Shown: positions 1 through 61,421 of the stretch, piece by piece
How the letters are laid out: each line of letters starts with the position of its first letter
Position numbering within the stretch: position 1 is the stretch's first letter
Source: Penicillus capitatus
Taxonomy: Eukaryota > Plantae > Chlorophyta
Length of the DNA stretch: 64,000 nt
Direction of reading: 5' to 3'
NCBI GenBank assembly: GCA_965649825.1
Contig: OZ287711.1
Span: 355,201 to 419,200, forward strand
Made by a program: the position numbers and the translations under genes
The notes under the pieces: generated by a model
What the model was told of the DNA's origin: nothing
Databases searched by the model: none
The model's input: only the letters and a program-made list of their open reading frames with translations

Positions 1-3000
1 ATGGTCACCATTCCTGCAAGACGGATCTCGGCTGACGTTTCTGACACTTTATCGCCACAGGCTTTCTCGATCACCGGCATCAAGGTCTTCAGCGACTCCG
101 GTAAATCAGCAGCCAGACGTCCAGCCATTGCTGCCGTATCACGCCGCACACCGGCCGATCCGTTCTCGTACGTCTTTTTGATGATATCCAGAAGCGTCTG
201 TTGCTCGTCTGGAGCTTTCTTGGCCATGTACTCCATCGTTTTGACCGTTTCCTGTCGAACCTTGTCATTTTCTCCTGAAAGAAGACGCTCGAGTACTGGA
301 ATAAAAACAGACGCCTGGGACGTCTTCTCGTAGATAAAATGCCTCATAATCTGCACTGCCGTTCGGCAGACTTCTTCGTCTTCATCGTCACCGCCGCCGA
401 TGATCATCTGCAAGATAGACTCGAACTCGTCATCTGTCACCGATGACAGACTGCCGATCACTTCCAGCGCCGCCCGTCGTGCAGAGCTCTTTAGACTGCC
501 GATCGCTTCCTGGATCATCGGCAGCACGACAGGAAACAGTTCGCGCTTGTCTGTCAGGAGACTGATCACGGCTTGCAGTGCCGTATCCTGAACGACGGGC
601 CGATCGTCCTTGAACATCTCGGTAAACAACGGCGTGAATCTCTGGAAGAGATCGGGCACAAAGTCCAGCAGCTTTCGCATCATCTGTATCCCGACATCAC
701 GCGTCTCGAGATCCGAACTCTGGATGTTGTGCTGCGCCAGTTCCATCAAAATCTTCAAGTGCTTGTTAGATCTCTTGACAATGATGACGACGTCTCCGAA
801 TACATCGTATCCCAGTGCTTTCTTGACCGTTGTCGTTTCTGTCAGCTGATCGAGGATCTCGGGAACAGCGGAGAACAGTGAGGGGCATTGCTGAAGCATG
901 TGTCCCAGGATCTCGCGAAACTCTCGATGCTTCACATCTGTGTCTCTGATCAGCGAAACGGCAGCCTTGATGAGCAAAGCGACATCATCATCGCCCTCGC
1001 AGCAGTCTTTCTTTGATTGGGCATTTTCCAGCCCAGTCAGCCAAGCTTCGATGATGTGCAGCTTCAGGAGAAAATGCTGCAGACCGATGATCTCGATCGG
1101 TCCGTCGTCAAAGAATGACAGCAGCTCGGGGAGGTCTCCTTGTTCTGCCTCTGCCATGTGCTGTGCCAGGAACTGCAACGTTCTTTTATACCTGTTCAAG
1201 TACTTCTCTTCTCGCAAACAGTCGACGGCTGTCTTGCCGTTTGGCGAATCGAGATTCTTTAAGCTTTTCGCCACCCACGTCTTGGCAAAGTACTCTTGAA
1301 AGGTCAGATGCGGAAACTGATAGTCGACGCCTTCTTTCTTGAACAGCAAGAATCCGCTCCAGATCAATACTTCTCTGACGGTTAGGCGAGATACTCTTTG
1401 CTCGACGAAGCTCACACTGATGAGGATGTGATCTTTGCGCAGCGCATCGAACGCGATGACCTCAAGCGCCTCGAAGACATCTTCACGCTTGGCATTCCCA
1501 GCACGGAATCCCATTTTCTGTACGAAGCGATTCCAGATGTGGTTGACCATGTCGGAATACATGGCGGCCGGACTCCGCTGACTGAGGCTCACCCCCTCTA
1601 CCCAGAGGAAGCACAGGATGTAAGTCATCACTGGGATGTGCGCCACTTCCCACAGCGAATCCGTTCCTCTCAGAGCATCCATTAGACCTTGAGCGTCTGC
1701 GTCCGTTTTCTTGTGTCTGGTAACCATCTCTTTCTTCACGTACCTGTCGACCTGCTCGTCACTGAATCCCAGGCACTCCACTTCGAGATCGGTGAGTTCA
1801 CGCATTGTACGGAGGTTGTATGGACGCGTCAGCCAGAGGACTTTGCATTGCTTGCGCTTTGCTTCGTTCAGAATGGCTTCGGCTTTCTCGTCCACTTCAT
1901 CCCAGCCATCGATGATGAGCAGCGTCTTCTGGAGATCCAGGTGATCATCCACTTGGGCGCACAGCCCTTTATCAAATTCGCGATTTCTGGGAAAACATTG
2001 TCTGAGAATGAACGCCAGAAACTCTTTGGACGCGCCTTCGATGTCTTCCTTAGTGTTGAGCTCTCTTGCAGGCAGGACGTAAACAGCGTCGAATTCCTGG
2101 AACAACTGACCCCCTGCCCACATATACCCGATATACTTGCTGATGCATGTCTTCCCAGATCCTGGCTTTCCGTGAAACAAAATCGTTTGGATATCCTGCG
2201 CAGGTGAATTCTCCTTTACGATTCTCTTCCTGAACAGATCCTCCAGCGCAATCGAGTTTGCAACTCGCCGTCCAGTGGACTGGTCGTCTTTACTCTGATG
2301 CGAATCGGCCTGTTCCGACGATTGCTTCTTATCCTCCACGATCTGATAGAAAACAATGTGATGCTCCATTTCTTGCACATGCAGACGTAACTGACTGTCG
2401 AACAGAGAAGGCACCTTCAATACACAGGCGCTCGGTGAACACAAGATACTATAAAAGTGAAAAGCCTTACTGTGGCGAAGGCGATGCTTCGGTACCGACT
2501 CTTCAACAGTTCGACGTTTTCTCGTGCTTCTTGCAATGGTATGTGGTTGAACTCTCGACCGATCCGGGTGAAGAGAACTCCAGTGGGTTCTGAAGACGCG
2601 TGCACAGGTTCGCGGAGCTTCTCATCAAGCTGCTTGTTGCCCATCCATTGTTTCACGGCTTTCTTCACTGCCTCCGACTGGCCGGCATCGATCAGTTGCT
2701 GTGAGGATCTCGCCGCCGCCGCCGCCGCCTCATCGTTGCCTCTCGAATGGACGGTATGAAGACAGCAGAGCAGCGCTTCCACGATCTGTTTGTCTCTGAC
2801 CCATACGCTTTTCGTAACGGCATCCGCCAGAGCAAAGAGCTTCGATGACCCTGAGATGCGAACTTCGGCAGAATCTGGAGCCAGCGCGAGACGACGGAGC
2901 TCCTGCATGAGTCCAAAGAGCAACGCCTTGCCGTCTGCATTGAGTCGAATCTTCCAGACAGATTCTTCCACAGTCCTGTAGCTCTCCTCGAAAATCGGAA

Positions 3001-3988
3001 GATTCTGGTGATCCTCGACAGTCTTCCTGCCCGCAACGCTGAGAACTTGAAGCAAATCGTACCACTGTCGTTCTGCAACGTCTATGTTGTCAACCAGTTC
3101 TTTTAACTTTCCAGGTAGGTCTCCCAGCTTGTCTGGATCAATATCCAGTTTTGTTATCTGTATCATTGCGTGAGCGATGCGCAGGAACCCGCAGGTGAAC
3201 ATCTGCAAGAATTGGAAGAACTGCTCAGCGATAGTGGACTCTTCGTCTAGCTTCAGACGCTGGATGCCCTGTTCGATAAGTCTGAAGTAGTACAGGACGG
3301 GATAGTGCTTGCATGAGATTCCCATCGACGAGCGCTTTGTCCTGAGGCTCCGCTGGAAAGTCGTCTTCTCCTCGCTCACCACTTTCTCACACGCGATGCT
3401 TTGCATGAGGACAAAGACTTGATGCAGTGCCATGAATGTGGCCTCGTGTTTAAGGAAGTTCGCCTCCGTCAGCCTTGGCTTTGGACGCAGGCTGTCCATG
3501 AGTTTGTCCGCCACTTCTGTGAGCTCTGTCAGGTCTTGCTGGAAAACTTCGGGAGGCGTCCAGATCAACGACCTGTACAGCGCTTCTGCGACGCTTTCGT
3601 CAGCGAATTTATCGCCGGGAATCCAGTCACTCAGAAAGAAGACCACATCACGGAGCAGCTTCTTGTCGTCTTCCGTCCTATGTTTCATCTTGCAGAGCTC
3701 CACGTATTCCATGACGTTCCCAGCGTCGACATGCTTCTCTTTCGTCTCGCCGTAGAGGCGAAGACATTGCTGAAGGAGTTGTTCCGTTTCGCCCGCCGGC
3801 GAACCATTATAGATTTGGACGAGAGATGTCGTGGAGTCGACGCCCTTCTGTCGCATGAGAGCCCTCAGCTTCTTCTCGTCTGAAATGTCATCGCTCTGTC
3901 TTGCTGGCGGCGCTTCCGGACCGCTACCGTCTTCATGGTCATCCGCGCTGCCGATACTGGGTTCAACCTGTATCTCGTTGGTGGACAT
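1..3988 (-). CDS. NACHT NTPase with helical N-terminal domain and C-terminal HEAT-like repeats (NLR-like STAND protein); 3' end outside window
   Basis: Exon 3988-2471, intron 2470-2391 (GTAAGG..CAG, phase 0), then a frame with no stop in the segments I translated and no terminated ORF in the track, taken as open to base 1. Walker A HGKPGSGKT, Walker B LLIIDGWDE, LWLTRP sensor, winged-helix YQFPHLTFQEYFA, then HEAT-like helices (RRAALEVIGSL, EEVCRTAVQIM). Confidence 0.9.
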
Positions 3989-6320
3989 GACTGGAGTCTG
4001 CGAAGCACAAGAAATCTTTTGACGTAAGGAAAACGAACAGCGAACCGACCTTGGTGCGTAACGCGTTCAGTCGATGTATGCGATTTCCGCAGCAGGCGAA
4101 GATTTGGCGTATCGCTTTGATGGAAACATTAAACGTCGGATGTCAAGTACTGCTGAATATCAAACGCCAATGCGCAATCAGTCGCCATCTTCTGGCGGAT
4201 CTGTGACTTGGCCATTGAGGTACATCGTCTCCCCCGCAAGACCACCGTCAAGCGCGACGTCTCAAACATATCGACAAGCATTGCCCTCCAAGCAAATCCA
4301 GATCCTCGGATGTCGCTGTGTGTAGAGAGACAGAGGCTCGGCGTGATGTGACTCGGAACCTAATCGCACATACCGATCGGTTCGCCGAGATGACTTGAGG
4401 GAACGATAGCTTCAGCGTGGACGCCGCCTTCTGCTGCAAAACGCGAGCGCTTAGTGGGACTGGAAGACTCTTTGAGTTCGTTCGTCTTCACAAGTCCAGT
4501 CATCAGAATTCAGTGCCGATGCTCATCTGGCGACACGCCAAACACTGTGACACATCCTGGACGTTCTCGTAAAGAGCGATCACGTGTTACGAAGGACTCT
4601 CACCGCTGACACCTGGACTAAGCGTTTACGCAATCGTCGGCGCACGGAAAGTCGGCTCGCTTCTCATGCGTGATGCTGAACTGAACCGCCCGTCCATCGT
4701 GCCCTCTGCAGAAGTCTCGTAAGCGTTCCTTGCAGATCTTTCGCGTCAGCGTGAGTTCGGTTATGTAGATGGAAGGCATCTCTGTGCGACGCAAGAGTGT
4801 CGTTATCTGAAGACTCGGACGTTCATCTCTGCGCGGCCTCACCTTTTGGCTGCTTCGATACGATCATCGTTCCTCTGGCTTCGAATTCTGCCCACTACTC
4901 TGCTTGAAGTCCCTCAGTTGGGCGAGATCTCTCAGCAAGTCAGTCTGCATGAATGAACAGCCCGTGGCAGGGAGGTCCGTCATCTAAGCTGACAGCACCG
5001 CTGTCACCTCACGCCGAGTAGACTCCATCTACATACATCTGTTCTGAACGGTGGAAATGCAAAGACAGGCATAAACGTTGGCGGTTCGTCTCGAACTCGA
5101 ACGACGTGTGCTCGAACAGATTTCACTAACCATCTTGTCAGATCGTTGTTCGTCTGCAACGTTAGCGGTGCCCAAGATGGGATTGCTAAGAACAGAGAAG
5201 ACAGACGGTGTACAGAGTCCCGTTTTCAATGACAAACATGCTAATGTTAGTGTCCGTCGGGCAGCGAACGAGCTTAAGGCAAAAATGCCGAATTCCTAGA
5301 AAAGAAGTGAAGGTAATCCAGACATGCGCATCGATGTAATCCATCGCTTGCAACGCGAACTCTCCTGTTTGACGCCACAGTCAACTGGAAGACGAAAACC
5401 GAAGGTATCCACGTCTTTTTGCTCAGAACACATCTCACCTTCCACATGAAGTGTGTAGATTCCCGTTTGGTAAGCAGCATCGGACAGAGCGTGACTTTTT
5501 TGCACAGTCGGTGTGGCCATGACAAGGTCAAAGATGTGACAGGCAGTCTAATGAGTCCCACTTAAATGCGTAGATGTGGTGCGCGTAACGCGATGTGACT
5601 TGGATGCGCGAATTCGTCAGCACGGTCATCACTGAGGTGTAGGGTCTGTGTTTCTCGGAGAATTCTAACCGCCAACATATCCAGAGGCGCTTCCTGTCCG
5701 ACGGCATTCTCCATTTCCTCCGACTCGATCTGACGTCAGGCGACGTCACATCGTGAACTTCCAACCCCATAAAAGGCGGAACGCAGTGGTCATTCCCGTC
5801 TTTTTGTCGACGGCATTTCGTTTCAAGCCTCCGACTGGCGCAGATGCAAAACGCGCGACGGTGAACTTGTAAGGCAAGTCCATATACACTGTCGACGCGA
5901 CGCGGACGCAGTGTCTCCGTCGGCGCAGTTCTTCGCGTTCTCAGGTGTTGGAACCCCGAAGACGAACTCAGCCAGCCGACCTCAACGAAAGGTACGTTTC
6001 TGCCACTGTATGTTCACTCGGCGCTTGTCTTGGCTCCGTAGGTCTCTTCGCGAGCAGAAGTGGAAGACGGAAACGTGGTCGCAGAGAGAACACGGACGAG
6101 GGCGCCTTCGCGCCAAATTCTGAAGGTAAGTTCCCCGAACAGAGAGGGCTCTGAACTAACGCCAAGTTTCTTCTGCACGTAGGCGGCATTAGAAAAGTCC
6201 GTATAAAACAGAGTCCCGACCCAGCTTCGTGAGCGCAACAGGGAAGATGCAACGGAATCGTCACTTTACAAAACCAGGTGTTTTTCCTATGCTTTTTTTT
6301 GCAGAGACGAGAACGAAGGG

Positions 6321-6466
6321 TGACGGGCGGGCTTCGGCCTGCGAGGAGATACTCGCGGACGGTGACGGGCGGGCTTCGGCCTGCGAGGAGATACTCGCGG
6401 ACGGTGACGGGCGGGCTTCGGCCTGCGAGGACAGACTCGCGGACGGTGACGGGCGGGCTTCGGCCT
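6321..6466. repeat. 42-bp tandem repeat (about 3.5 units), each with a GCGGGC-TTCG-GCCTGC hairpin
   Basis: tgacgggcgggcttcggcct recurs at 6321, 6363, 6405, 6447. Confidence 0.95.
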
Positions 6467-8238
6467 ATCTTCCATGGTGGTGGCACCGCCTTTACAATTT
6501 TTCTTCACTTCTCTTCAACTTGCTTCCCTCGAGGACCGGTCTCGGTTCCCGACGGGATAGCCTAATTTTTGTCTGGCGTTCTATGCGCCAGACGAGCGCC
6601 GCGCGGCTGAACAGATCCTGTTCGATCGCGCGACAATCGTCTGGCATATACTCCGCCAGACAATATAACTCACCATAGATTTTAGTCATACGGATCTCTT
6701 TAGACGGATATCGACTGTGAAGGGCGAGCTGAAATCCCATCTACCTTCTTCGAGATCTTAGCTATTATCGAGAACATGATCTCGAAACCAAGTCGGAGGA
6801 AGGAAGGAAGGAAGGGCACTGCATGAGAACGCCGCAAGGCTTTTCTTTGAGAGAAGTACACGAGGTTTTCAACTTGGGACGTTAGTGTATTGCTTAAGCT
6901 TGTCACAAAGCGACCTAGGATGTAAGGAATCGGGAAACTACAGTTTGTCTAATTTGGTAAGCGCGTCTATGCATAGGATAGCATGCACTTTCTACTAGAG
7001 ATTCGCTCTGATTTCATATAGTTACCATCATCTCGCAGCATCTTGATGCCAGTCGAGAACGGCACGCGTTTGTAAGGCTAGCTGTTACAGAACGAATGGA
7101 TCTATCTATCTTTCGTAACACACACCTGTCCTGCGTCGAGCATGTTCGAGTGTGTAAGTCATTGGTTCTCAAACACACACATGAAACTGCCACAGCAACG
7201 CTTCTTTTCTGTCGACATCCGTCGACTTTGTCTCACAGCCGATAAGCTTCATTTCACGTCTCCTCGATTCGCCGAGAGTTGGCTTCATCGTTGTATGGAG
7301 ACCAAAGACTCCTCCTGCAAAAGAGATACAGCAGATGACGCAACAGAGGACCGAAGTTCCTCCAGCATCGCTAAACGGAAGCCGCTACGTCATCAAGTGT
7401 CTACTGGATAAGCCTCATTCACAGGACGATGTCTCTGGCCTCTTTGTCGTTACCAGTCTTTCCCTTGACTCGCTTTGAATTCTTGCTTGATTGACGGCAG
7501 ACCGAAGATGACTACGACAGCAAAGGAAGACAACAAATGATTCGCTGTGCTGCTGTATCGTGCACGCACGACGTGCGAGACAAACGCGTTTTAGATTCGG
7601 TGGACGCGGAGGTCGAAACGCCTGAGGCAACAGATGTTCAGAGTACATGGCACGTTCATCTTCGTGTCTCTCCTCTAGGTCACTCAGATTGTCAGTTCAC
7701 GCTTGTTCTCTTCGCTTCCGTGACTCGAACACGTTTGCTTCGCAAAGCGCGACGGACGTCGTGACTGCCATCTCCGATTCTCAACTGGCGCTAAGTGCTA
7801 AGTGTGATCGGACGACGTCCCTGAAGCCCGTGTATATGTAATCGCATGTCTCTAACAGATGTCTCTGGCGTACACGGATGCCGGCTCTGACCATGGCATT
7901 CATCCCCCAAAACACTGCTTACATAAGCAACGATGTGACTGTTCCAACATCCAAGAGACAAATGTATATGACAGATCGATGCAAAGAACGCACTGCATCG
8001 AAAGCCTTCAGCAAGCAGACAGCCTTTCTTTCATTCGTTGCGTTCCCCGTGCTGGCCACACTTAGGGAAGACTTGCATGACGACAATCGGCGTTTAATAG
8101 CCGGCAACAACAACACCCGTACTGTTAAAAAACGTTCCCCCGGTGCTCCAAGCACAGAAATGGCAGGTCTTCTCCCTCGACGCGTCATCAGAACAGGCAA
8201 GACAGACAACGACGTCGATCATCAGCCGCGGTGCTTAA

Positions 8239-9351
8239 TCAAGTGCGCGCCAACAGATCAACTTTGTGATGAGATCGTTTCACTAGCTCGTCATCGCCGA
8301 CTTTCTCCCATGATCCGTATTCATGATCTACGAAGATCTTTATGTCTCCAGCAAGCACCTTCCATACTTCAGTGACTTCTCTCTCGAACGTTTTGCGGAT
8401 TTTCTCCGTAACGATGAAGTTCACTTTAAATTCCTTCTGCAAGTCTTCGAATCTGAGGTCCACTGTTCTGCCAAGTGTCGCCCCGGTAATTGCATATGCA
8501 GTTCCAAACAGCGTAAAAACGATTCCCACTCCTGGCGCTGCCATAGCCGTGATTGCACCAGCGCCAGCAATAGCTGCACCAGTGCCAGTCACAAAACAAC
8601 GAATCATGCTGTAAGACTTAGCGTCTTTTTCGTCGACTTCGACGACAGGAACCACAACTGTACTTTTTCCGGTCGTTACTTCGATGTAGCTGTCATTAAT
8701 AATTTCACTCTTGGTTTCCTTAGGACCTGGCGTCCTCTCATATTTTCCAGCAAACAGCGGGCTATTAAAATCCAGTTCCTCTCTGGAAGGAATCAAGGTT
8801 TCGTAGAAACGGACGATGTCCGAGACGGCGTCGTCGTACAGACGACGAGTTTTGCCGTCGTCAAGGATCTTGGACACAAACCCTTGTAGGTGAAAGATCG
8901 CTACTGGTTCCTTCGTGCACTCGCTGTTAATCTCGCTTCGGGCTCGATCGAGTGTGGATCTGTTTTCCGAACGAAGCGCGACGACGATCCTCGGAAAAAC
9001 GACACTCATCTTCTGCAACAAGTCCTTCTCCAACGCCGACAGCGTCTGAATAATGACGATTGGCGGATAGAGATCAGCCTTGCCGGTTCCTGCGAGGAAT
9101 TGCAGTAACGTTCGTTCGGGAATGTCCGTTCCCCCGCTGTCGTCGAAGCCGACAGTGTCCACCATTCTGACGGCGCGTTTGCCAAAACGCATCGAATATC
9201 CCCGCGCCTCCTTCGTGTGCGAATTAAGACCGTCGGACACGATGTTCGGAAGCGCGCTTCCCTGGAGGATGCGATTGGCGGTGGAAATGAACTCGCCTTT
9301 ACCAATTCGCGTCCTCCCGACGATAAGTAAGACGGGATCTAAGGACCCCAT
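8239..9351 (-). CDS. AIG1/Toc34-like (TRAFAC) GTPase with C-terminal hydrophobic hairpin, paralog 1, intronless
   Basis: G1 GRTRIGKGE, G2 SHT, G3 DTVG; Gly/Ala hydrophobic stretch FVTGTGAAIAGAGAITAMAAPGVGIVFTLFG; likely ATG at 9351 (MGSLDP). Confidence 0.85.
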   Translation of the reverse strand: MGSLDPVLLIVGRTRIGKGEFISTANRILQGSALPNIVSDGLNSHTKEARGYSMRFGKRAVRMVDTVGFDDSGGTDIPERTLLQFLAGTGKADLYPPIVIIQTLSALEKDLLQKMSVVFPRIVVALRSENRSTLDRARSEINSECTKEPVAIFHLQGFVSKILDDGKTRRLYDDAVSDIVRFYETLIPSREELDFNSPLFAGKYERTPGPKETKSEIINDSYIEVTTGKSTVVVPVVEVDEKDAKSYSMIRCFVTGTGAAIAGAGAITAMAAPGVGIVFTLFGTAYAITGATLGRTVDLRFEDLQKEFKVNFIVTEKIRKTFEREVTEVWKVLAGDIKIFVDHEYGSWEKVGDDELVKRSHHKVDLLART

Positions 9352-9904
9352 CTGAGGATTTATCTGACACGAACGGAAGGGAGTAAACGAGACGACGGTA
9401 CGCGTCTGTCGACGCAAAAAGGAGAGGCGAAAAAGACGCAGAAACGCCGAACAAAGGCAAACCGAAAATCGTTCGGTGTTGTGTCTGACGCGACTTTATA
9501 CGTGAAACATACGACCTTGTCGAAAAAGTTCGCGTAGATGACTCTGAAATCGGGACACGTGGCAACTGTTTCATCTGGAAGGGGTGCGTTTGTGCACCGA
9601 TGGAATCCCGATACCTTTGCAGAAAAGAACGCCGAGTGTACTGTTCGCTTCGAAATGGCGCATCGACTGTCTTACTTGGGTGAGTTACTTCTTCGACTCA
9701 GGAAGGATGACTGTGTCTTCAGCACGAGCGCGCCAGAAGGTTCCTTGAACGAACGATGTAATGTAGCAAGTCTTGGGATGCGATTTTCAGTAGACGCGAC
9801 ACTCGTAGGACTACCTGTTCTAATGCGTCGTCCGAGGCATTTTAGGTTTCCACTACCTCTCATCAAATCGGTCGGTCCACGAGAAAAGCCGCATGTTTTG
9901 CGGC

Positions 9905-10447: not shown

Positions 10448-10909
10448 AATTCCATTGGACAGACTCCTGCTGACAAAACGATCGCAGTGGATACCTGGTC
10501 CACGACTCCTATATCGGCTTTATCTTGGACTGCTGTCGGTTTCCTGGCATTGCAGAACGACTCATCGTCTGACGTGTCAAGAAATGCCGTCTACTGCGCT
10601 CTCGGCTTGTGGAGTGCTTAGACTCTCTACGGCATCTGCATATGGTGGCAGAAAAGGTAGGCGTCTTCGCGGAGTTCGAAGAGGTTGACAGGCGGCGGGA
10701 TATATCTGGAAGCAGCGCTCAGAAGGCGGCGCCACTGTGGAATGCGTCGTCGCATGGACAACACGAGAGGTCGTGTCACTTCGAATGCGAACATCTGAGG
10801 CATGTCGCATGAAGCTAGACGACGTCAGCGAGGACGATAGAACGAAAAACACTCGACGCGCAGAACGTCGTGTTTCTGCATTCTTCAGCAAGACGCCGTT
10901 CGTTACAAG

Positions 10910-12600
10910 ATGAAGTACGTCTACTCCACGGAAATAACCTAATGCTCACAGTTGTGTGTCGACTCGTAGTTCCGATGCGTTGACGGATATGGAGAACAGG
11001 GGTCCTTGCGTAGGCGCTCCGCTCAGCGCCTTTCTCGAGCAGGAACACTTCTTGCTCAAAGTGTTGACGCACCTCGTGGAAGATAGTCTTCACGAATGCC
11101 GTCGCGTCTGTCGCCGGTGGCGCGACGCCTGTGGGAAGCTACCCGTCAAGCTAGGAAATGTGTATTCGGATGAGTTGCAAACAGCAGTTGACCTGTTCCC
11201 AGAAACCGAAAGGCTTGGCATGCGCGAATGGATTAGCAGTGTGGACATCATCGAGACGCACATCGTCCCACAGCTGCCGCGACTGGCGAATCTGAAAGAT
11301 CTTTCTCTTTATCTCGACGGCGTATCCATCGATCTGCGAAGCCTGGTCGCATGCTTTTCGTCGATGCAGCATCTTGGGTCACTCAGCTTGTATACTACGC
11401 ACGAGGACACATTGCATTGTTTCGTTCACGACCTGCGTTATCTGACGAAGCTGACTTCTCTGTTTCTCGACCATAACTGTGTCCTGCACAACGATCTGGA
11501 TCCAAACAGCTGTGTTCAAGGGCTCCGCCAGCTGACGATACCTTTCCACTTGCTGATCAACGAGCGGGGCGAGTTTGTCTTCCCCATGTTGACGGGACTT
11601 ACCAGCCTCGTTATCGGAGGCGGCAGAGACCCAGAGCAGTTCCCTTACAATCTACAGGTTTGCCAATCACTGGATCTGTTCGTCTGACAATTCGTTTGTG
11701 TTGTGGCAGAGCATCGTGCCTTGCGCTGCGAATCTACAATCGCTCAGTATACACACGACTTTCGTAGAGTTGTCTTTGACAGGGCCGTCGCCATGGAGAT
11801 CGTTCTTGCATCTGTCAAGCCTGACAATTGAAAGCTGCGACCAACGGGATGCGAGCTTCTTCCAAGCACTGCAGCAGATGCTCCACCTGACGAGTCTGGC
11901 CTTTACCGTTGCATCCGAAAGAGACAAGCAAGGCTTTGTGGACATCGTGCCCTCGCTCACAGGTCTCAGATCCCTTTCTCTTTCCCGTGATAACATTCCG
12001 GGTATCTCCTTTGAAATCGTGAATCGCCTCAGCGTTCTCTCGCAGCTCACACACCTGGATTTGAGCGATCTACTGGGAGACCAGCCTCTACGCCTCCCGA
12101 AGGGAATTGTTGATCTCAAGCTTTCTTTTGATCACTCTCTTCCGGAAGGCCTGTCCGAGGAGCTGGTCGGCTTGACCCAACTCACGTCACTGGCCCTGTA
12201 CAATTACCAAGAGATATATGCATTTCATTCGGATGGTATGACACCATCCCATTTCTTCAAGGAACTCGGGCAGTTGAAGACACTAACATGGTTCAATATC
12301 TGCATGGATCGCCCGTTTCTGGACGCTTTCGTAGCTTTGACCGGCTTGACGAAGCTACGCATTTATCAGATCGAGCCAAAGAGATTAGATCAAAAACTGT
12401 TCTTCCGGCAGTTGGGTCTGCTCTCAGATCTGAGGGAGCTTATGATTCCGTTTCCCTCCAAGTTGCTGGTCGACAGTGAAGTTGGACTGCCTCAAGGATG
12501 CCTGTCTAAGCTCAGGAAAATAGAGTGCTCTCCGATCCAACGCGCCAAAGATGTCGGTAATCCGGCAATGGCGAAAGCGTTTCCTTGTCTCCGATGGTGA
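10910..12600 (+). CDS. F-box-like + LRR (RNI/AMN1-like) protein, paralog 1
   Basis: Exons 10910-10914, 10970-11657, 11710-12600 (GT-AG introns of 55 and 52 nt, frame restored). FLLKVLTHLVEDSLHECRRVCRRW F-box-like motif; repeated LxxLxL units. Confidence 0.88.
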
Positions 12601-49320: not shown

Positions 49321-50943
49321 ATGCTTCTGGAGATCCTGCTCTCCCTCTCGGCGTTCGTCGCCTTGGCCTCGCTGTGGAACAGAGGCCGCTACGACCTGAG
49401 CAAGATCCCGTCCCCTCCTTCGCTGCCGTGGGTCGGCAAGGGCATCGAGATGGCCATGGCCATAAGCCGCGGGGAGGACCAGTTCGCCCAGCGCGACCTC
49501 TGGCTGAGACAGACCGGAAATCCGAAGGTCATGCGCGTACGTCCAGCGTCCACCGCCGCGCGGCTGCCCGAGGCGCTCGCTGTTGGCAGGTCGTGGCGTT
49601 CGGCAAGACAACGCTGTACGTCCGCGACGCCGAATGCATCAGGACGGTCGTCCTGGGGAAGACGCATCCGCTGCCGCGGTCGGCCGGAGTCGCTGGATAC
49701 CTGCTTCCGGTGAGCGCGGCAGACCGACAGCCGACGGTCGCCCCGACGTCGTCCGTGCGCGTAGGTGCTGGGGAACGACCCGACGGCCAAGTCCGCCATC
49801 CTGACCCAGAACGTGACGCCGTACTCCAAGGCCGTTCGGGCGGCCTACGCTGTCGCTCTGCAGACCAGCCGTCTGGCGAAGGCGGTGCCCAGAATGCACG
49901 CCGTCATCCTCAGCATGATCGATCTGATCGAGCGGCAGCGGAAGGCGGGTCCCGTCGATCTGCAGGACGTCTGCGTGAGAATGACGATGGACATGATCGG
50001 GACGGTGGCGTGGGACGCGAACTTCGGCGCTCTGGACGGCAGCACGGGAATCTACGACACGTTTCAGACGGCCTTCGACGTCGGACTGCAGCTCCGCATC
50101 GATCCGCGCACGCAGCTCCGACACCGGATCCTTACCAGGTCGAAACAGGCGCGGCTCTACAAGAAGGCGATCAAGGACATGGCGGCCGAATGGCACAGGC
50201 TGCTGAACGCGGCGAAGGAGAGAGAAGATCCGGCCGAGGGCGAGGAGCCCCTCTGGTGCCTGCCGAAGAAGACCGTCGATCCGGAGACCAAGGCTCCGCT
50301 GCGCGACAAGGACCTGGTGACGGAGCTGTCGACGATGATGGTGGCGGGGATGCCGACGACGGGCCACCAGCTGACGTGGATCCTCGCCTTTCTCTTCGCG
50401 AACGGAGGCGCCCTGGAGAAGCTCGCGAACGAGCTGGCAGAGCACAAGCTGAGCGCGTCGCAGACCGAGGGGATCTCTCTCAAAGTCCTCGAGGAGATGC
50501 CCTATCTGAACGCGGTGATCAAGGAAGGGATGCGGGTGGGTCACGTCATCCTCGAGAGCACTCGACGCGTCGCGACGGAGGACATGACGGTCGCGGGGTA
50601 CCGCATTCCGAAAGGGACGATGCTGTGCGTTCCGGGCAACCGATGGGTGGATCCGGGGGAGGACTGGAGCGACCCTGGGGTCTACAGACCGGAGAGGTGG
50701 CTGACGGGCGAGGACGCTTCGAGGAAGCACTACTTCCCCTTCTCGCACGGCGCGAGGGACTGCGCCGGACAGAACCTGGCCAGGTTCGAGATGCGTCTGG
50801 CGATCGTCCACCTGCTGACGCGATACCAATTCGAACTGAAGAAGCCGCTGGAGGAACTGATGCGGACGACCAAGACGAGGCTCAGCACGCAGGCCGTCGG
50901 AGGCGTCTGGGTGGACGTCGTCCCGAAGCCGCTCTCCCCCTGA
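49321..50943 (+). CDS. Cytochrome P450 (family unassigned)
   Basis: N-terminal anchor plus PSPPSLP hinge; EGMR, PERW, FSHGARDCAG; introns 49537-49589 and 49710-49764. Confidence 0.95.
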
Positions 50944-53691
50944 GCGGCATCCCTCCGCTTCTCTCTGGCGTCCTGATCCAGACGTTGTTCGCCGTTTTCG
51001 GCAGCGACGCTCTGTGTGTTTCTCGACAGTGTGTGGGGCAGTGTTTGTAGCGCGCAAAGGGCGCGGGGATTCTTACGATCTGTCGTCATCGACGCGTTGT
51101 TCGTCGAAGACGTACGCGTGTCAAAAATCGATTGTGCGGGGGAGATGGCGTGGGCGACGCGTTCCGGTCTGTTCCTCCAGAAACCGCGCCGCCGCCAAGA
51201 ATCTCGGCCGTGCGTCGCGTCATTTGAACCACGCCGGCAGTCCGACTTGTCGCGACGCGCTCCGTCTAAACCGGCGACCGTGCGCCGTCGCACACGTCGA
51301 CGCGCAGTCGCCTGCCGCGACCTCGATCGACTGCATCTTCGCCGGATCCACACGTCGAGTTGCTAAGCACCACCGTGTGCCGCGCTGCCGCGTTTCCATT
51401 CACGAACGTCGCGAAAGACAGATGAGATCTAGAACATCCGTCCTGATTTCATAAACCAGTGATCGCGCAGTGTGTTCTCGCGATGCGTTTGCGGCCCTCT
51501 CTATCCATCTGTCACATCAATGCGATTCATTGTATGAATTCACGTGCACGGTAACAGTCTAATGCCGCGTCTTGTGCGCTCCGCAGTTCGTGTCTTTCGT
51601 TTATTGTCTTTCTCGTCGTTTGCTCCTCGCGAACTCTTTTCCTTTCACATCGCGAATCCCTCTAAGCTTGAGTTCGCAAAACCTGGCTGACCTACACGAA
51701 TGGCGCTAGACTTCGGATGCTTCTTCATGCCTGTTCGGAGATATCGTGGTCCCCTCTTCCTCCTGGTTTTGGCGCGCCAACCTTTCCAATGGTACTTTTC
51801 GAGATAAATGTCATTTATTGGATGAGCCCTGACTGCTGTTGCACGCAACAGTTTCAGCCAGCAGATCCTCTGATGTGAAAACTGCTGCCGTCCTCAGTCG
51901 CGAACACCGTCCTTTTGAACGAGCCATCCGCAATGCAATCTGTCCGTTCTAAAGAATTAATTGCCTGTGTCGTGTCTTTCTTGAGTCAAACAAAACTGAT
52001 GAGAATCGTGATGCAGCGACGTCTTTTGCGACAAGTCTGCAGGAGTCACGCGCAGACTGGTGCTCGTTGGGAGCGCGTCAGCACGTGCTTGTCTGCTCCG
52101 GGTGTCGAGATAGGCGAAGACACGGAAAAGACTTCAGCAGCGCGGACTGCATGCCGGCATCGAGGATGCAGTTTCCGGGAAAGCAGAACTCCCTGAGCCC
52201 AGGAAAGCATCCCTTCAGTTCTCCTCGCATCAGCTGATCGATCAATAGCTGAGGGGAAGGGATGCGGAGGACCTTCAGATTCGGGGAGCTCAGCAGAGCG
52301 CGGATGAGATCGAGGTCGACGTGCGTTTTGGGTTCGCTGAATCGCAGCTCCGTCAGGTCGGACATTGCGGCCAGCGCTTCCAGACAGTGTGGGCACAGAA
52401 CGACATTCTGGGTCTTGAGCGCCCTCAGTTTATTGAGGCGTTTGAAGAAGCAAGAAGGCGTCACTCCGTCGGACTGCAGAAGATGCATGATGCCAGAGCT
52501 GTTGATCTCCAGGGAGCAGAGATTCGGCAAGGACATTAGGACCTGAGACGTACCCAGATGAGGTTCCTGATGGAAACTGAGCGAGAGATCTACAAGCGTC
52601 GTCGGCAGACGCAAGGAACATCCAGTCGACGAGGCGATGGCGCCCAGACAGAGTCGTGTCAGCCGAGAGAGCGCGGTCAAGCATTGTGTGGCCTCTGTCG
52701 AGACGGAAGAGGACGCTCCTTTCGCAAGAGTCAGCGATCTGAGTCCAGTGAGAGCAGTAATGCATCCTGCGAAAGTGTGATCGCCGTCGCCGTCTGGGAA
52801 GATCGCATCCAGCTCCGTCAGGCGACTCAGCTGTCGAAGCCCTTCGAAGAGGATGTCGTTCCACGGAGCGGTGCTGCGGATTCTGAGGCTGGCCAACTGG
52901 CGGAACGCGCTCCAGGGAGCCTCCTCCGATGGCGGCGAGTGTCTGAGCGGCACATCCGTCTCCAGCGATCGAAGCGTCGGGGCGTAAGGCGAGATGGACT
53001 AGGAAAGACACGTGGTGTCAGGAGCAGAACGTGTTGAGACATGCTGACCTGCAGATCCAACTGGCATTGACCCAGGTCGTCGCGACCGGACGAGCGGCGC
53101 ACCTCCAGTCGCGTCAGCTGCGTCAGTGAGGGAAAGAGGAGCTGGCCCCAGACGTTGACCAGCATCCGGGCATCCAACTTCAGCTCTCGCAGTCCTCGCA
53201 GTTCGGTCACCGGCTCGAGGAACATCTGGATGTCGTGGACGACGGCGAGATCCAGCCTGACCAGATGCGTCAGACGCTCTAGAGTACCGAGGGCGTCACG
53301 AAGGGCGTTTTCGTAGACGATTTCGAGAGTGAGGGACTGGAGGCGATCCAGTGTCGGGAATCGATGTAACGATGCGCTTCACACGAATCGGCTCTCAGCG
53401 CGAACGACGACGTGAACGCACGCTCAGACCGCGAACACAGGAATACGAGTTAGATTACATGAAACTGTCGCGTTTAAGTACTCGCGGTGGTTGGGGATTC
53501 CCTAACCTCAAGAGCAACAGCTGTGAACTCCTGCCCACGTTCAACAACCATCAGCCTACCGTTATTGTAACAGCAGGTCAGAGGCGAACACCCGTCGCGA
53601 CCGATGGTCAGCGCGCCAGGGTGGTTCTTCGCCGACGCAACCGTTCTGATGGCTGTGGCGGGCGACGTGACATCTGCATATCCGACAGTGA

Positions 53692-53700
53692 CTCCCCCTC
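53692..53700 (-). promoter_or_regulatory. Polypurine tract
   Basis: GAGGGGGAG on the minus strand, 4 nt before the 3' LTR. Confidence 0.8.
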
Positions 53701-53825
53701 ACTTAACACGTCACGCCCCGACGTTTAAGTGACACACGAAAAGGGAAAACAACCTTGCCTAAGGAAAGGTAGAACCACGAGCGTTTTTAAAACAACGTCG
53801 TTTATTAGAACACCGCCACAGATGC

Positions 53826-55424
53826 TCACAGATCCATAGCGCTGCGTCTTACTCCATCACCACGTGAGATCCAGACGGTCAGCAGCCACGTCGGTGCACC
53901 TCTCTTGAACACGTCCTCTGGCTTCCCGTTGTCCCCGAGTCGATAGACACGGAGCTCCGTCCCTGGTTCTACGCGAGGAACGATGACTTCTATCCGTCCA
54001 CGACACGTTGGTCCTCCCCGGAAACTCGCGAAAAAGCGCGCAATGGAAAGTGCTTCACTCACACGGCCTTTCGCATCGACTTCCGCAAGAAGCCCCACAG
54101 ACGACAGGAACTTCTTCCGTCGGGCGCATGCTGCAGTCTCGACAGCCGAAAGGTATGGTGGCGCCATTCGCCGTTGGGTTCCCACGTCTTCTGCGTCTTC
54201 ACATTGGGTACCTTGAACGAATTCTGCGAAGCGTCTGGTCGCCGAGACCAACTCAAGCTGCCCCCGTGGTTCTTCTGCGGCTACGAAAAAGAGACTTCGA
54301 CAAGGTTCTGCTTCGTCGTCGTTAGTGAGAACTTCCATATGTTTCACAGCCCTCGTCCTTTCGAACGTCAGGAATGATAGACGAGGTGACATCTCACACC
54401 ATCGGGACAGGATGGGCAGACGGGTTGCAAGTCCATCGACACAGCCACTGTCCCACGGAATCGTGAGTTCTGCGTCGAGGAATTCGACGACAGAGTGCTG
54501 GAGTCGGATACCCGAAAGCTCTGCCGGTTTCGGTTCGGAGAAATGGTAAGGTTCGCATGTGCATTCTCTGCTGTCATTTCCGTCGCGGTCTCCGTAACCG
54601 CCGAGGGTTCGCATCGACTCATCCTGCGCAGCTGTCACCTCAGATTCGCCGCAGGGGTCGCATGCACTGTCGTTGTCGTCTTCACAATCGAGAGTCTGCG
54701 TCTCTTCAACAGACTCCCCCAGAGCGGTCGCCATGTCTGACTCGCTTCTGACTTCGAACACGTCGTCTTCCAAACGTCGCTCTTGGCGTTTCTCCTGCTT
54801 CTTTACAGGAAGAATGGTCATGCCAGCTGGCAACTGGCGAAGTGCTTCGTCTTCTGCATCAGCCGTCGCAAACTCTGTTGCGTCGGTTGGCAAATGTCGA
54901 CTCGTCTGCTCGAGTCTACGGGCTCCATCCGGTCTGGAGACCGTCGTACGGTTGCGTCCGAGCTCAGGCTCTGGAGCTTCGTCTTCGTCCTCGTAGGTTT
55001 CGTCGAACCAACGGACACGTCCGTGTGCGCCCGCCTCGTCGTCTCCGCGACGGAGAAAAGATGCACTGGTCGATGCTCGCCGAGTACAGACGGACTTTTC
55101 TGCGCGTTCCGCGCGCAGTCTCCTCTGTTTTCGACAGAGGCTCAGGAGCTGCTTCCCTGTCCGGTTCGGGTCGTGCCTCCCGAATCGGTCGGTCAACCGA
55201 CGGCTCCACTCTGTCCACTGCAGAGCAACAACGTCGCTAAAACCGAAGTGTAGTTCGGCCCAGTCTGCCGCCGGTCCGTCGAGAAACGCAATGGCAATCT
55301 CGGCCCGTGTTCCTGGCTCGTCGTCCACATGACGTAAACAAAAGAACGAGGTCATCGCGTCGACCCATTCCCTCGGGTCGCTGCGTCCATCATAACGCGG
55401 GCAGGGTGTCGACTCGATGCGCAT
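53826..55424 (-). CDS. gag: Retrotransposon gag-like protein with long acidic C-terminal extension, 532 aa
   Basis: YDGRSDPREWV..AIAFLDGPAADW..WTEWSRRLTDRF resembles Ty3/gypsy-type capsid; uninterrupted ORF. Confidence 0.8.
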   Translation of the reverse strand: MRIESTPCPRYDGRSDPREWVDAMTSFFCLRHVDDEPGTRAEIAIAFLDGPAADWAELHFGFSDVVALQWTEWSRRLTDRFGRHDPNRTGKQLLSLCRKQRRLRAERAEKSVCTRRASTSASFLRRGDDEAGAHGRVRWFDETYEDEDEAPEPELGRNRTTVSRPDGARRLEQTSRHLPTDATEFATADAEDEALRQLPAGMTILPVKKQEKRQERRLEDDVFEVRSESDMATALGESVEETQTLDCEDDNDSACDPCGESEVTAAQDESMRTLGGYGDRDGNDSRECTCEPYHFSEPKPAELSGIRLQHSVVEFLDAELTIPWDSGCVDGLATRLPILSRWCEMSPRLSFLTFERTRAVKHMEVLTNDDEAEPCRSLFFVAAEEPRGQLELVSATRRFAEFVQGTQCEDAEDVGTQRRMAPPYLSAVETAACARRKKFLSSVGLLAEVDAKGRVSEALSIARFFASFRGGPTCRGRIEVIVPRVEPGTELRVYRLGDNGKPEDVFKRGAPTWLLTVWISRGDGVRRSAMDL

Positions 55425-55460
55425 GGTCTGTCACCACGTAAACAAAACGTTCGACAGTTG

Positions 55461-55476
55461 CCCCGGAGGTCCACCA
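55461..55476 (-). promoter_or_regulatory. Primer-binding site, probably tRNA-Ala-complementary
   Basis: TGGTGGACCTCCGGGG 2 nt after the 5' LTR; complement ..GAGGUCC-A-CCA has U70 and A73 as in tRNA-Ala. Confidence 0.7.
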
Positions 55477-57175
55477 GTTGTCGGGAATCGATGTAACGAT
55501 GCGCTTCACACGAATCGGCTCTCAGCGCGAACGACGACGTGAACGCACGCTCAGACCGCGAACACAGGAATACGAGTTAGATTACATGAAACTGTCGCGT
55601 TTAAGTACTCGCGGTGGTTGGGGATTCCCTAACCTCAAGAGCAACAGCTGTGAACTCCTGCCCACGTTCAACAACCATCAGCCTACCGTTATTGTAACAG
55701 CAGGTCAGAGGCGAACACCCGTCGCGACCGATGGTCAGCGCGCCAGGGTGGTTCTTCGCCGACGCAACCGTTCTGATGGCTGTGGCGGGCGACGTGACAT
55801 CTGCATATCCGACATCCAGAGACTGAAGTGACGTTTGCAGGAAGTCGATATCGATCTCCTCCTCTGGCAACACGAGGCTCAGATGGCGCAGCTTCGTCAG
55901 TCGCGGCAGATGCGGCATGAGATGTCGCTCGACGACATCGGCCGAGTCGAGCAGATAGTCCGGCACCAGGGAAACGGCCTCGGGAAACATCTCCGCCACT
56001 GTCTCCACTTCGTCTGGACGAATGCCTCGAATCTTGACCGGCAGCTTCGCGCACGCTTCGCACCATCGGCAGCAGACGCGTCTAACTTCGTACAGGCCGT
56101 CGTCTGCAGCGACATACGACAGCACCTTGTGCAGTATGTCTTCGTTTTCGAGCAGCGCGCCAAGCGTATTTGGCGTGTCCGAAGGAGTGGCGGCTTGAGA
56201 TGTGCGCCTGTTGTGTTGGAGTTCTGAGCTCCTTCTCCTCGAAAAGACGCCCCCCCATCGAAGACGCCGCGTGCTTTTTTCCTTTGCTCGCAGAATTCAA
56301 CTGCAGCGAAGGACAACGAATGGTATCGCTTTACGTTTATATCCGTCGACACGTTGCTCCTCTCATCTTCACTCACAGTTCGCTGCTCATTAGGGCCAAC
56401 GTGACGCGACATTTGTGTCATCGACTGTATCCGTTGCTCTTGTGTTATGCGTCGGACAGCGCAGCGCGTGTTTGCACAGAGTTCTTTGTCTTTGCGAGGA
56501 AGCACACCGGGAGCTGTCTCAGAACGAACAGGTGTGAACAATTCTCTCGTCGACCTGCCCCTCTTTCTTGTCTTACCAAAGATTGCATTGAGTTCGTATA
56601 GGGTGACTGTTACACAACGACATAACACACGGTCGTATCTTCAATGTCGACGACAGCTCTGCGGAAATCGCGCGGCTACAAATCCTATACGCCGCCACGG
56701 TTCTCCGCCTCATCGGTGATGTGACTTGTTATCAGTGCATGGCATGACAATCGTTCATCGCGTCCGGCAGTGGACGCCGCGGAACATAATGGGTACGCAA
56801 CATTCGTGCATTTCGGTAGAGTCGATCTATGGTCTGCAGTCATCAGCTGCCACGAGCACAGGACTGACTTATCAATAAAGATGACAAGGGCGTCAAAGTT
56901 CAGGCTACATTCTCGTCACATCAGACTTTAGCGACGATCCACAAGATACAGACAGCGCACTATCTGTTTGCAAGATTTCTTCAAAAAACGGCAGTTTGCT
57001 CTTTTGTGTATTCGGTCGAGAAACATGGATATCTGAGAACATGCCATATTCTTTGTATGCACGGCCGGAGTACTCGTCGAACGCAAGAAAGTTCTCAGAA
57101 ATCAAGTAACATCTAGAGTTCGGAGGTAGAAAATGTGCAAAAGAGTCATCTACATACCACAGAGCGCCAAGTGAT

Positions 57176-57560: not shown

Positions 57561-57565
57561 GACAC

Positions 57566-59566: not shown

Positions 59567-59759
59567 GGAAACGCTTTTACCATCGAAAGCAAGGAAACGC
59601 TTTTACCATCGAAAGCAAGGAAACGCTTTTACCATCGAAAGCAAGGAAACGCTTTTACCATCGAAAGCAAGGAAACGCTTTTACCATCGAAAGCAAGGAA
59701 ACGCTTTTACCATCGAAAGCAAGGAAACGCTTTTACCATCGAAAGCAAGGAAACGCTTT
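59567..59759. repeat. 26-bp minisatellite (7 full units plus a partial) made of the last codons and stop of the adjacent gene
   Basis: ggaaacgcttttaccatcgaaagcaa at 26-bp period; the reverse strand reads AAAGCGTTTCCTTGCTTTCGATGGTAA (KAFPCFRW-stop). Confidence 0.97.
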
Positions 59760-61421
59760 CGTCAATGCCGAGTAAGTATTGGCATCAATGCTGCCTCTCT
59801 CAACGCGATCTAATTTCCTGAGCTTGGGCAAACTCCCACACGGCAATCCAAATTCACTGTCGACCAACAACTCGTATGAAAACGGAATCTTAAGCTCCCT
59901 CAGATCTGAGAACAGGCACAACTGCTGGAAGAAGAGTTTTTGGTCGACTCCCTCTGACTCGACACCACAAAGATACAGCTTCGTCAAGCCGGTCAACGCC
60001 GCGAAAGCGTCGAGAAAGGGTCGATCCAGACGGACATTCCGCAATGATAGTGTCTTCAACTGCCCAAGTTCGTTGAAGAAATGGATTGGTGTCATACCAT
60101 CCGAATGAAATGAATACATCTCTTTGTAATTGTACAGGGCCAGTGACGTGAGTTTGGTCAAGCCGACCAGCTCCTCGAACAGGCCTTCCGGAAGAGAGTG
60201 ATTAAAGGAAAGCCCGAGATCGACAATTCCCTTCGGAAAGCGTAGAGGCTGGTCTCCCAGGAGATTACCCATATCCAGCCGCGTGAGCTGCGTCAATACT
60301 GTGAGGTGTTCCGTGATCTCAAACGAGATACCCGGAATGCTAAAAAAGCCAAGAGAAAGAGATCTGAGACCTGTAAGCGAAGGCATGCTTTCCAGAAAGC
60401 CGTGCTTGTCTCTTTCGAATGCCATGGTAAAAATCAGACTCGTCAGCTGGCGCATCTGCTGCAATGCTTCGAAGAAGCTCGCATCTCGCTGGTCGCCTCC
60501 TTCAATTGTCAGGCTTGACAGATGCAAGAACGATCTCCACGGGGACGGCCCTGTTAAGGACAACTCTACGAAAGTCGTGTCTATACTGAGCGATTGTAGA
60601 TTCGGAGCATAAGGCACGATGCTCTGCCACAACACAAACGAATTGTCAGACGAACAGATCCAGCGACTGGCAAACCTGTAGATTGTAAGGGGACTGCTCT
60701 GGGACTCTGGCGAATTTGATGAAGAGGCTGGTAAGTCCCGTCAGCATGGGGAAGACAAGCTTGCCCCGTCTGTTTATCAGCAAGCGGAAAGGCATCGCCA
60801 GCTGGCGGAGCCCTTGAACACAGCTGTTTGGATCCAGATCGTTGTGCAGGACACATTTATGGTCGAGAAACAGTGATGTCAGCTTCGTCAGATAACGCAG
60901 GTCGTGAACGAAACAATGCAATGTGTCCTCGTGCGTAGTATACAAGCTGAGTGACCCAAGATGTTGCATCGATGAAAAGCATGCGACCAGGCTTCGCATA
61001 TCAACGGAATAGCCGGAGAGAAGTAGAGAAAGATCGTGTAAATATTCGAATCGCTTCAACTGTGGGGCCACGTGTGTTTCTATGACGTCCCCATTGCCAA
61101 CCCTGGCGAACACGTACAGTGTTTGGGCTTTTGGGAACTTCTCTGCTGCTTCCTGCATGTTGTGCAAAGATATTGTCGTTAACCGAACAGGCAGCTTCCC
61201 ACAGGCGTCGCGCCACCGGCGACAGACGAGGCGGCATTCGTGAAGGCCATCCTCAAGGACGTGCGAAAGCACTTTAAGCAAGAAGTGTTCCTGCTCGAGA
61301 AAGGCACTGAGCGAATCGCCCGCGCAAGGACCACTGGTCTCCGTATCCGTCAACGCATGGGAACTGCAATTCAATACGCAGTTGTGAGCACTAGGCTGTT
61401 TCCGTAGCGGACGCACCTCAT
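59733..61421 (-). CDS. F-box-like + LRR protein, paralog 7
   Basis: Exons 61421-61417, 61363-60676, 60623-59733; FLLKVLSHVLEDGLHECRLVCRRW; core nearly identical to paralogs 1 and 3. Confidence 0.88.

Follow-up and report, generated by a model that had tools for sequence, protein, structure and literature searches.

The stretch of DNA analysed here, referred to throughout as the window, is 64,000 nucleotides long (contig OZ287711.1, positions 355,201 to 419,200) and contains one gene for a NACHT-HEAT protein of the STAND type, three paralogous genes for GTPases with a hydrophobic hairpin (G1 to G3), seven genes of an F-box-like/leucine-rich repeat (LRR) family (F1 to F7), a weak ankyrin-like fragment, and two copies of a conserved, structured non-coding element. 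The genes listed in an earlier note on this DNA are all found, and its domain assignments (NACHT and HEAT, a GIMAP/Toc34-like G domain with a hydrophobic hairpin, F-box-like and LRR) are reproduced with Pfam, AlphaFold, and Foldseek. The note had described a single cluster of 62 kb; the families are present as described, but the span is not uninterrupted, the interval from 42 to 51 kb being occupied by ordinary genes. Members of the three main families and the non-coding element are arranged in an oriented cassette that recurs at six loci in two related genomes and may represent a functional unit of NLR-type surveillance.

The NACHT-HEAT gene (1–3988, minus strand) consists of two exons and extends past the start of the window. 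Exon A (3988–2471, minus strand) encodes an all-α N-terminal domain of ∼505 amino acids for which a Pfam search gives no match. It is followed by a 56-nt GT-AG intron (2470–2415) and by exon B, which runs from 2414 on the minus strand off the window start and encodes first the NACHT domain and then the HEAT repeats; the database record of the complete exon B product has 1126 amino acids. The NACHT domain is matched in Pfam with E 5.7e-18 and 65.7 bits (cut-off 26.7), several HEAT models match as well, and the translation contains Walker A GKPGSGKT and Walker B LLIIDGWDEVDE (DGWDE), as the STAND/NACHT clade requires. The tripartite STAND layout of N-terminal domain, NOD, and C-terminal HEAT repeats is found both in this gene and in a 32%-identical paralog at another locus (L011), and the N-terminal domain is conserved across the family (32% identity in L011). 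A search for tandem repeats over 1–2400 found none. Relatives comprise seven close paralogs at 47–87% identity and ∼40 more at 28–41% on large ENA contigs, a family of ∼50 members, several of which lie on contigs matching the coverage of the window's contig. The next-nearest proteins outside the family are NACHT-LRR proteins. The AlphaFold model of the N-terminal domain has a predicted local distance difference test score (pLDDT) of 57, and its Foldseek matches are generic designed-repeat, ARM, and HEAT solenoids with TM-scores of ∼0.2–0.27, which are uninformative.

All three GTPase genes lie on the minus strand. G1 (8242–9351; 370 amino acids) belongs to a subtype located upstream of NACHT genes and has the P-loop GRTRIGKG and a central hydrophobic hairpin. 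G2 (24103–25398; 431 amino acids) has a long Gly/Ala-rich hairpin; its exact protein is not on record, the nearest being a 99% copy, P0001, at locus L001. G3 (28664–30108) is split by a solo long terminal repeat (LTR), with both halves still open, and has a GKS P-loop. The family is nearly an orphan. When 1.84 billion representatives were searched exhaustively with the family profile, only 41 proteins were recovered. AIG1/MMR_HSR1 GTPases are the most distant among them, and a single one carries a name, an 'expressed unknown protein' from the diatom Seminavis robusta; a profile scan of JGI metagenomes found nothing. In Pfam, AIG1 is matched by 2 of 14 members, below the AIG1 threshold (best E 0.021), and MMR_HSR1 by 6 of 14 (best E 7e-4). 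A sequence search of the PDB with the profile gave only weak matches to CesA chaperones (E ∼0.02), which were treated as chance. The P-loop reads GRTRxGKG in every N-terminally intact member except G3 (12 of 14 aligned, the count leaving out the N-terminally truncated P0010 and P0011) and also in distant relatives, including that of Seminavis, and the canonical G1-motif P-loop GxxxxGK[ST] is found within the family in G3 (GKS) alone, the copy disrupted by the LTR.

An AlphaFold model built with 14 GTPase paralogs has a pLDDT of 69 overall and ∼85–93 in the G domain, and places the G domain first, followed by a two-stranded β ribbon of 37 residues per strand around a disordered hydrophobic loop and by a small C-terminal β domain. 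The top Foldseek matches of the model are GIMAP7, GIMAP2, GIMAP5, and Toc34, with E values of 1.8e-5 to 1e-3 and target TM-scores of 0.42–0.58, and the G domain is accordingly modelled as a GIMAP/Toc (paraseptin)-type fold. A hydrophobic, Gly/Ala-rich stretch of ∼25–70 amino acids (defined by a windowed mean hydropathy of at least 1.4) is present in 12 of 15 members, in most of them with a central PPV/PG turn, and has the look of a membrane hairpin or anchor, either monotopic or made of two helices. We regard these GTPases, with their GKG P-loop, long β ribbon, Pro-turn hairpin, and C-terminal β domain, as a new protein family.

The F-box/LRR family, of which F1, F3, and F7 are of the F-box-like type, is represented on the plus strand by F1 (10989–12600), which is divergent from G1 and has a 52-nt intron (11658–11709); by F2 (16630–18566), a divergent paralog ∼30% identical to F1; by F3 (20790–22590), which is convergent with G2 and has a gene-conversion tract in common with F1; and by F4 (31197–33058), which is divergent from G3. 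On the minus strand are F5 (39505–41193), F6 (52078–56164), which has an LTR element inside exon 1, and F7 (59733–61416), an inverted copy of the F1/F3 type. All seven share a phase-0 intron of ∼50 nt after '..LQ'. The Pfam cut-off for F-box or F-box-like is passed by four of the seven, F1, F2, F4, and F5, with 20.6–25.2 bits for F-box (cut-off 20.5) and 24.6–25.5 for F-box-like (cut-off 24.3; F1 scores 25.5); F3 and F7 fall just under the F-box cut-off, and the F6 fragment has no F-box match. The LRR_14 model scores 23–39 bits in these genes, under its cut-off of 40, LRR_4 reaches 30.3 in F7 against a cut-off of 27, and the family profile matches LRR structures in the PDB with E 1.4e-17, so that C-terminal leucine-rich repeats are present. 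Outside the window the family is confined to the metagenome assemblies ERZ25074695 and ERZ26696514. A 26-nt tandem array (59567–59759) extends over the 3' end of F7, stop codon included, and continues downstream; the tandem arrays of the window, here and elsewhere, are perfect or near-perfect.

The non-coding element occurs on the minus strand between G1 and the NACHT gene (6521–6750), where it forms part of the cassette, and again at 26952–27183, where no NACHT gene follows it; further copies are found at L001, L004, L005, L006, L007, and L008. Its core of ∼140 nt (6521–6660 and 26954–27093) is 90–100% identical among seven copies from two genomes, compared with ∼70% for the surroundings, and is predicted to fold into a near-perfect hairpin of ∼95 nt and a second hairpin of ∼40 nt (−84.8 kcal/mol, z = −10.3). 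Because the pairs never vary, covariation is uninformative on the structure. Rfam has no family for the element, whether the whole window is searched at gathering thresholds or positions 6300–7000 at E up to 10; a short-match BLAST search against the window and all loci returns the element's own copies and no complementary or target site; and as an exact pattern it was not found in JGI metagenomes. Tandem arrays with units of 42 and 34 nt adjoin the two copies (6319–6466 and 26729–26898), the 34-nt array being longer in L001. The invariance of this structured element is a noteworthy observation on its own.

In order, the cassette consists of a divergent F-box/LRR and GTPase pair, the non-coding element, the NACHT-HEAT gene, and often a second GTPase gene. 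The NACHT-HEAT product of the cassette has ∼1,600 amino acids (α-helical N-terminal domain, NACHT, and HEAT). The spacer shared by the F-box/LRR and GTPase genes measures 1.1–1.6 kb, the distance from GTPase to element is ∼1.6 kb, and that from element to NACHT-HEAT gene is ∼2.5 kb. The loci compared all derive from ENA metagenome assemblies ERZ25074695 and ERZ26696514; the window proteins are recorded on the 236,719-bp contig ctg340102_35x_l of ERZ25074695, from which L001 and L008 also come. A same-strand GTPase gene lies directly upstream of the NACHT-HEAT gene at six of the seven close loci (the window, L004, L005, L006, L007, and L008, but not L009), and six divergent F-box/LRR and GTPase pairs are present (F1–G1, F4–G3, one each at L004 and L008, and two at L005). 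L006 and L008 have a second GTPase gene downstream of the NACHT gene. GTPase subtype tracks position in the cassette, as the tree separates an 'upstream' clade (support 95/95) from a 'downstream' clade (94/98). L006 and L008 belong to different metagenomes and align collinearly for 21 kb with 70–80% nucleotide identity, which indicates that the cassette has been kept between two related species. The physical linkage proposed in the earlier note is therefore borne out, as an oriented cassette in six loci that is collinear between two related genomes.

A second block in the window comprises F4, G3, the non-coding element, G2, and F3 and looks like a cassette that has lost its NACHT gene. A hidden fourth gene was sought by tblastx between the NACHT gene and G1 (3989–8238), where similarity appears in all six frames, with stops, and the conservation of this interval is therefore non-coding. 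No description of the cassette or of the GTPase family was found in the literature on NACHT-HEAT proteins, on algal and diatom NLRs, and on how SnRK2 originated.

The region bears multiple marks of duplication, gene conversion, and insertion, as the earlier note had claimed in pointing to duplication, mosaic paralogs, and transposon knock-outs. Self-alignment matches 5698–9777 with 26195–30514, and 10752–12648 with 20717–22629 and, inverted, with 61423–59721. In sliding windows, F1 and F3 are 96–99% identical over 11218–11770, intron included, and 60–85% elsewhere, and F1 and F7 form a mosaic with tracts at 92–97%. The 12.6-kb segment 14102–26701 recurs on the same ENA contig as L001 8698–21296 at 99.85% identity; no difference occurs in the first 7.8 kb, the 19 that exist are confined to 21893–26698, and the copy represents either a segmental duplication of very recent date or a haplotype that was left uncollapsed. 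One difference, a 1-nt deletion, shifts the frame of the L001 copy of F3, and between G2 and its L001 copy six of the eight substitutions change an amino acid, approximately the neutral expectation.

Two LTR insertions with 5-bp target-site duplications (TSDs) interrupt genes of the cluster. The solo LTR in G3 (29394–29729) has TG..CA ends and the TSD CGATG, and the element in F6 (∼53352–55814, minus strand; 2.47 kb) has LTRs at ∼53352–53687 and 55478–55814 and the TSD TCCAG. The two LTRs of the F6 element are 99.7% identical, and the three LTR copies in the window, of 336–337 bp, are 99% identical, which indicates that the insertions are recent. The internal open reading frame of the F6 element (532 amino acids) has no Pfam match, and an internal gag-pol with reverse transcriptase and integrase is not found, so that the element is considered non-autonomous. 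In the related genome, L003 1–1822 holds a full Ty3-type element with RVT_1, rve, and gag-aspartic protease matches, a possible autonomous partner of this element. Duplication, gene conversion, frameshift, LTR disruption, and the loss of the NACHT gene from one cassette together constitute birth-and-death turnover, the mode of evolution that had been proposed for the locus.

Selection was estimated pairwise by the Nei-Gojobori method as ω, the ratio of nonsynonymous to synonymous divergence (dN/dS). Within the NACHT-HEAT family ω is 0.12–0.19 for the NACHT domain, 0.22–0.29 for the helical part of the NOD, 0.34–0.49 for the HEAT repeats, and 0.34–0.44 for the N-terminal domain; it is 0.25–0.43 for the GTPases and 0.51–0.55 for recent F-box/LRR pairs, compared with 0.13 for a pair of SnRK2 paralogs. 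A conserved switch with variable ends, and partners that are relaxed or partly diversifying, is the usual NLR pattern, and is no proof of positive selection. Codon usage separates the cassette families from their neighbours. The GC content at third codon positions (GC3) is 0.51–0.70 in the cassette and paralog families, a weak codon bias, and 0.88–0.94 in the genes of the island described below, and GC falls likewise over the NACHT-HEAT gene of L011 (L011 8000–14000). Low expression, a compartment with little recombination, or a separate origin could each explain this split.

The GC-rich island of ordinary genes (41900–51100; 59–68% GC over 42–51 kb) is outside the cassette system and encodes eS4 (minus strand), a TPR/HAT protein and a Nup-like protein (both plus strand), an SnRK2-type kinase (48178–49131, minus strand), and a P450 (49765–50943, plus strand). 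The kinase scores 293 bits to rice SAPK10 and 172 to the next family, eS4 is about equally similar to its counterparts in animals, fungi, and plants, and the P450 has no PDB match at E below 1e-30. The kinase at L006 was considered as the ortholog of the window kinase and rejected, because L007 has an 84% copy and the two are thus paralogs; their dS of 1.5 is therefore not a species distance, and the 70–80% identity between L006 and L008 is the better gauge of species divergence. Among the remaining features, the ankyrin-like fragment (∼14107–14310, plus strand) has ∼2 repeats and is sub-threshold (Ank_4 21.9, cut-off 22.7). A direct repeat of ∼280 bp with 84% identity (14259–14530 and 14983–15262, ∼720 bp apart) starts beside it in a stretch of 56–58% GC and may be the remnant of another element. 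Two 22-nt tandem arrays built of the same unit (36373–36553 and 38020–38136) flank 1.5 kb and possibly mark the two ends of a repeat element.

The nature of the host bears on how the locus is to be read. The window is of eukaryotic origin, with introns that are 50–56 nt long and GT-AG, and one GC-AG intron overall; L011 has the same 34x coverage as the window's contig and the same 50-nt introns. At 22467–23245, L011 carries a nuclear, intron-bearing gene for a plastid-type bS20c with an N-terminal extension, whose intron is apparently GC-AG and 50 nt long. Its best matches are to the spinach chloroplast bS20c, at 74–76 bits versus 46 for bacteria. The green lineage has rps20 in the nucleus, whereas red-derived plastids usually encode it themselves, and the nuclear bS20c gene thus hints at a plastid of the primary (green) type. 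Together with GC3 near 0.9 and the SnRK2-type kinase, it makes a plastid-bearing host of the green lineage plausible from sequence, though not demonstrated; the attribution to a green alga in the earlier note is to that extent sustained but is not established, the only named relative of the GTPases being from a diatom.

Our tentatively preferred interpretation, by analogy with known NLR systems and held at somewhat less than an even chance, is that the cassette works as one unit in NLR-type surveillance, within a lineage-specific cluster with fast turnover that belongs to an uncultured microalga, probably of the green lineage. The STAND NTPase would act as the switch and sense the ligand through its HEAT solenoid. 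Its partner or executor, anchored in the membrane, would be the hairpin GTPase, whose two soluble domains would lie on the same side of the membrane. The F-box/LRR protein would be either an SCF adaptor that controls how much of the neighbouring proteins accumulates or a further sensor, based on its LRRs. Candidate targets would be a virus, a bacterium, a parasite, or conspecific non-self. A more specific proposal, a three-part immunity cassette made up of a NACHT-HEAT sensor, GKG pseudo-GTPase executors, and an F-box/LRR turnover controller, with the hairpin as a small-RNA or structural-RNA regulator, is unlikely. The interpretation in the earlier note is thus supported in part, the defence role it proposes being a reasonable conjecture by analogy. 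The designation of the GTPases as effectors in that note is speculation; the hairpin looks like a membrane anchor and the P-loop is non-canonical. The sole basis for the ubiquitin-ligase role also claimed there is the borderline F-box match. As to the dN/dS check that the note proposed, ω is elevated (0.25–0.55, against 0.13 for the kinase), but it never exceeds 1.

Several observations weigh against surveillance as the function of the cassette. The AlphaFold model of the NACHT-HEAT N-terminal domain matched no known death or signalling fold in Foldseek, and PADLOC returned nothing relevant, its sole hit being a weak match of OloA to the HEAT region. The GKG P-loop of all GTPase members but one lacks the Mg-binding Ser/Thr, so that hydrolysis of GTP by the GKG members is, judged from this motif, doubtful. 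The F-box match is partial as well as borderline, covering model positions 8–35 of 47, and no pairwise comparison in any family gives ω above 1. The distant paralog at L011 has GOGAT, KH, bS20c, and FtsH genes as neighbours and neither a GTPase nor an F-box/LRR gene nearby; it is the sole distant member whose surroundings were inspected, and the linkage consequently belongs to one subfamily of NACHT-HEAT genes. Finally, the cassettes derive from one another by segmental duplication, and their recurrence therefore does not represent independent events; retention is argued solely by the collinearity across species, and these species are close.

One alternative is that the linkage is historical only. 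Here the three families would be unrelated, weakly constrained, and lineage-specific, brought together in a compartment rich in transposable elements, grown by duplication, and low in codon bias. The F-box/LRR proteins would act in general proteostasis, the GTPases would take part in some membrane process, and the locus would be no more than an ordinary gene cluster that evolves fast. The relation of every cassette copy by duplication, the absence of both partners at L011, the near-neutral substitutions and the frameshifted F3 copy of the 12.6-kb duplicate, the gap in GC3 between the cluster and its neighbour genes, and the existence of disrupted copies are all in keeping with this account. 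It has to contend, however, with an order, orientation, and spacing that persist both across two species and among paralogs whose dS approaches or exceeds 1, with GTPase subtypes that hold their position relative to the NACHT gene, and with a non-coding element far more constrained than its surroundings, and overall we consider it somewhat unlikely.

A second alternative retains recognition as the function and changes its object. The locus would serve conspecific non-self recognition (vegetative or gamete incompatibility, possibly mating-type-linked), in the manner of fungal het-type NACHT/NB-ARC genes, and not defence against pathogens. As is typical of NLR-like het genes in fungi, an N-terminal domain is combined with NACHT and non-LRR repeats in a family that has expanded and turns over rapidly, and near-identical copies or haplotypes differ structurally. 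However, no incompatibility effector domain (het, HeLo, TIR, or any other) was found, the locus shows no link to mating type, and the internal repeats of high similarity by which fungal het genes become polymorphic in repeat number are missing from the HEAT part. Conspecific recognition appears quite improbable. A selfish or mobile unit, or the cargo of one, with the invariant hairpin as a cis-acting site of recombination or replication, would account for the spread of the cassette and the conservation of the element, and draws on the high copy number of whole blocks, the near-invariant core with its near-perfect hairpin, and the activity of LTR elements in the region, but we regard it as very unlikely, since no transposase, recombinase, or terminal repeats are seen around the cassettes, the element has flanks that, although less identical, are homologous from copy to copy, which indicates that it was inherited with the cassette instead of inserting independently, and its orthologous position is kept between species.

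Under the preferred reading, a surveillance unit, the locus would have a wider significance. Unicellular algae are almost uncharted with respect to cell-autonomous immunity, and the ∼50 NACHT-HEAT genes would be testable candidates for the sensing of viruses, of parasites, or of one another by algae, with one subfamily fixed in a conserved cassette with a membrane-hairpin GTPase gene and an F-box/LRR gene. The hairpin GTPase family merits structural and biochemical study.

Comparison with known systems reveals partial likenesses for each component. Clusters of NLR genes in plants are regulated by hairpin-derived small RNAs such as miR482/2118, and the element resembles that system in being a conserved and very stable hairpin inside an NLR-like cluster; it differs in that the window hairpin shows no complementarity to any cassette gene. 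In Arabidopsis, SCF-CPR1 sets the levels of the NLRs SNC1 and RPS2. The F-box/LRR genes of the window are similar to CPR1 and to FBXL proteins in having an N-terminal F-box-like helix pair followed by LRRs and in forming an expanded, fast-evolving family, and by this analogy a role in setting NLR levels is plausible. In contrast to FBXL proteins, the F-box match is incomplete and the LP motif is replaced, and in contrast to CPR1, the F-box/LRR gene is paired head-to-head with a GTPase gene beside an NLR-like gene, an F-box/GTPase arrangement that to our knowledge has no counterpart for CPR1.

The GTPases resemble the AIG1/GIMAP/Toc34 paraseptins in the fold of the G domain, in a DxxG G3 motif, and in occurring as clustered paralogs, and their hydrophobic-x-R/T-x-x-D stretch sits at the position of the G4 motif of AIG1. 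Membrane association through hydrophobic segments, as predicted for the window proteins, is a further likeness to AIG1/GIMAP GTPases. Unlike those GTPases, they fail the Pfam AIG1 threshold, have GKG in place of GKS/T in the P-loop, and are near-orphans. The GIMAP anchor is a C-terminal tail, whereas the window GTPases have a central Pro-turn hairpin between 37-residue β strands, followed by a conserved C-terminal β domain.

For the NACHT-HEAT gene the closest comparison is with the STAND NLR-like genes of fungi and other organisms outside plants and animals, in which an N-terminal domain and NACHT are followed by TPR, HEAT, ANK, or WD repeats. NACHT proteins with TPR (HEAT) repeats are listed in fungi, with an architecture known from Podospora (PMC4986451). 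NLR-like genes are reported to be rare in chlorophytes, where only Chromochloris and some Scenedesmaceae are named (PMC13315243). The gene in the window is similar to the fungal and other NLR-like genes in its tripartite layout, its canonical Walker A and B motifs, and a HEAT-type solenoid instead of LRRs, as well as in belonging to a large paralog family in which the NOD is conserved and the repeats evolve faster (PMC4986451). It differs from them in an N-terminal domain of ∼505 amino acids that matches no described NLR effector domain, in a host that is probably an alga of the green lineage, and in the position of the gene within a fixed cassette together with two other families.

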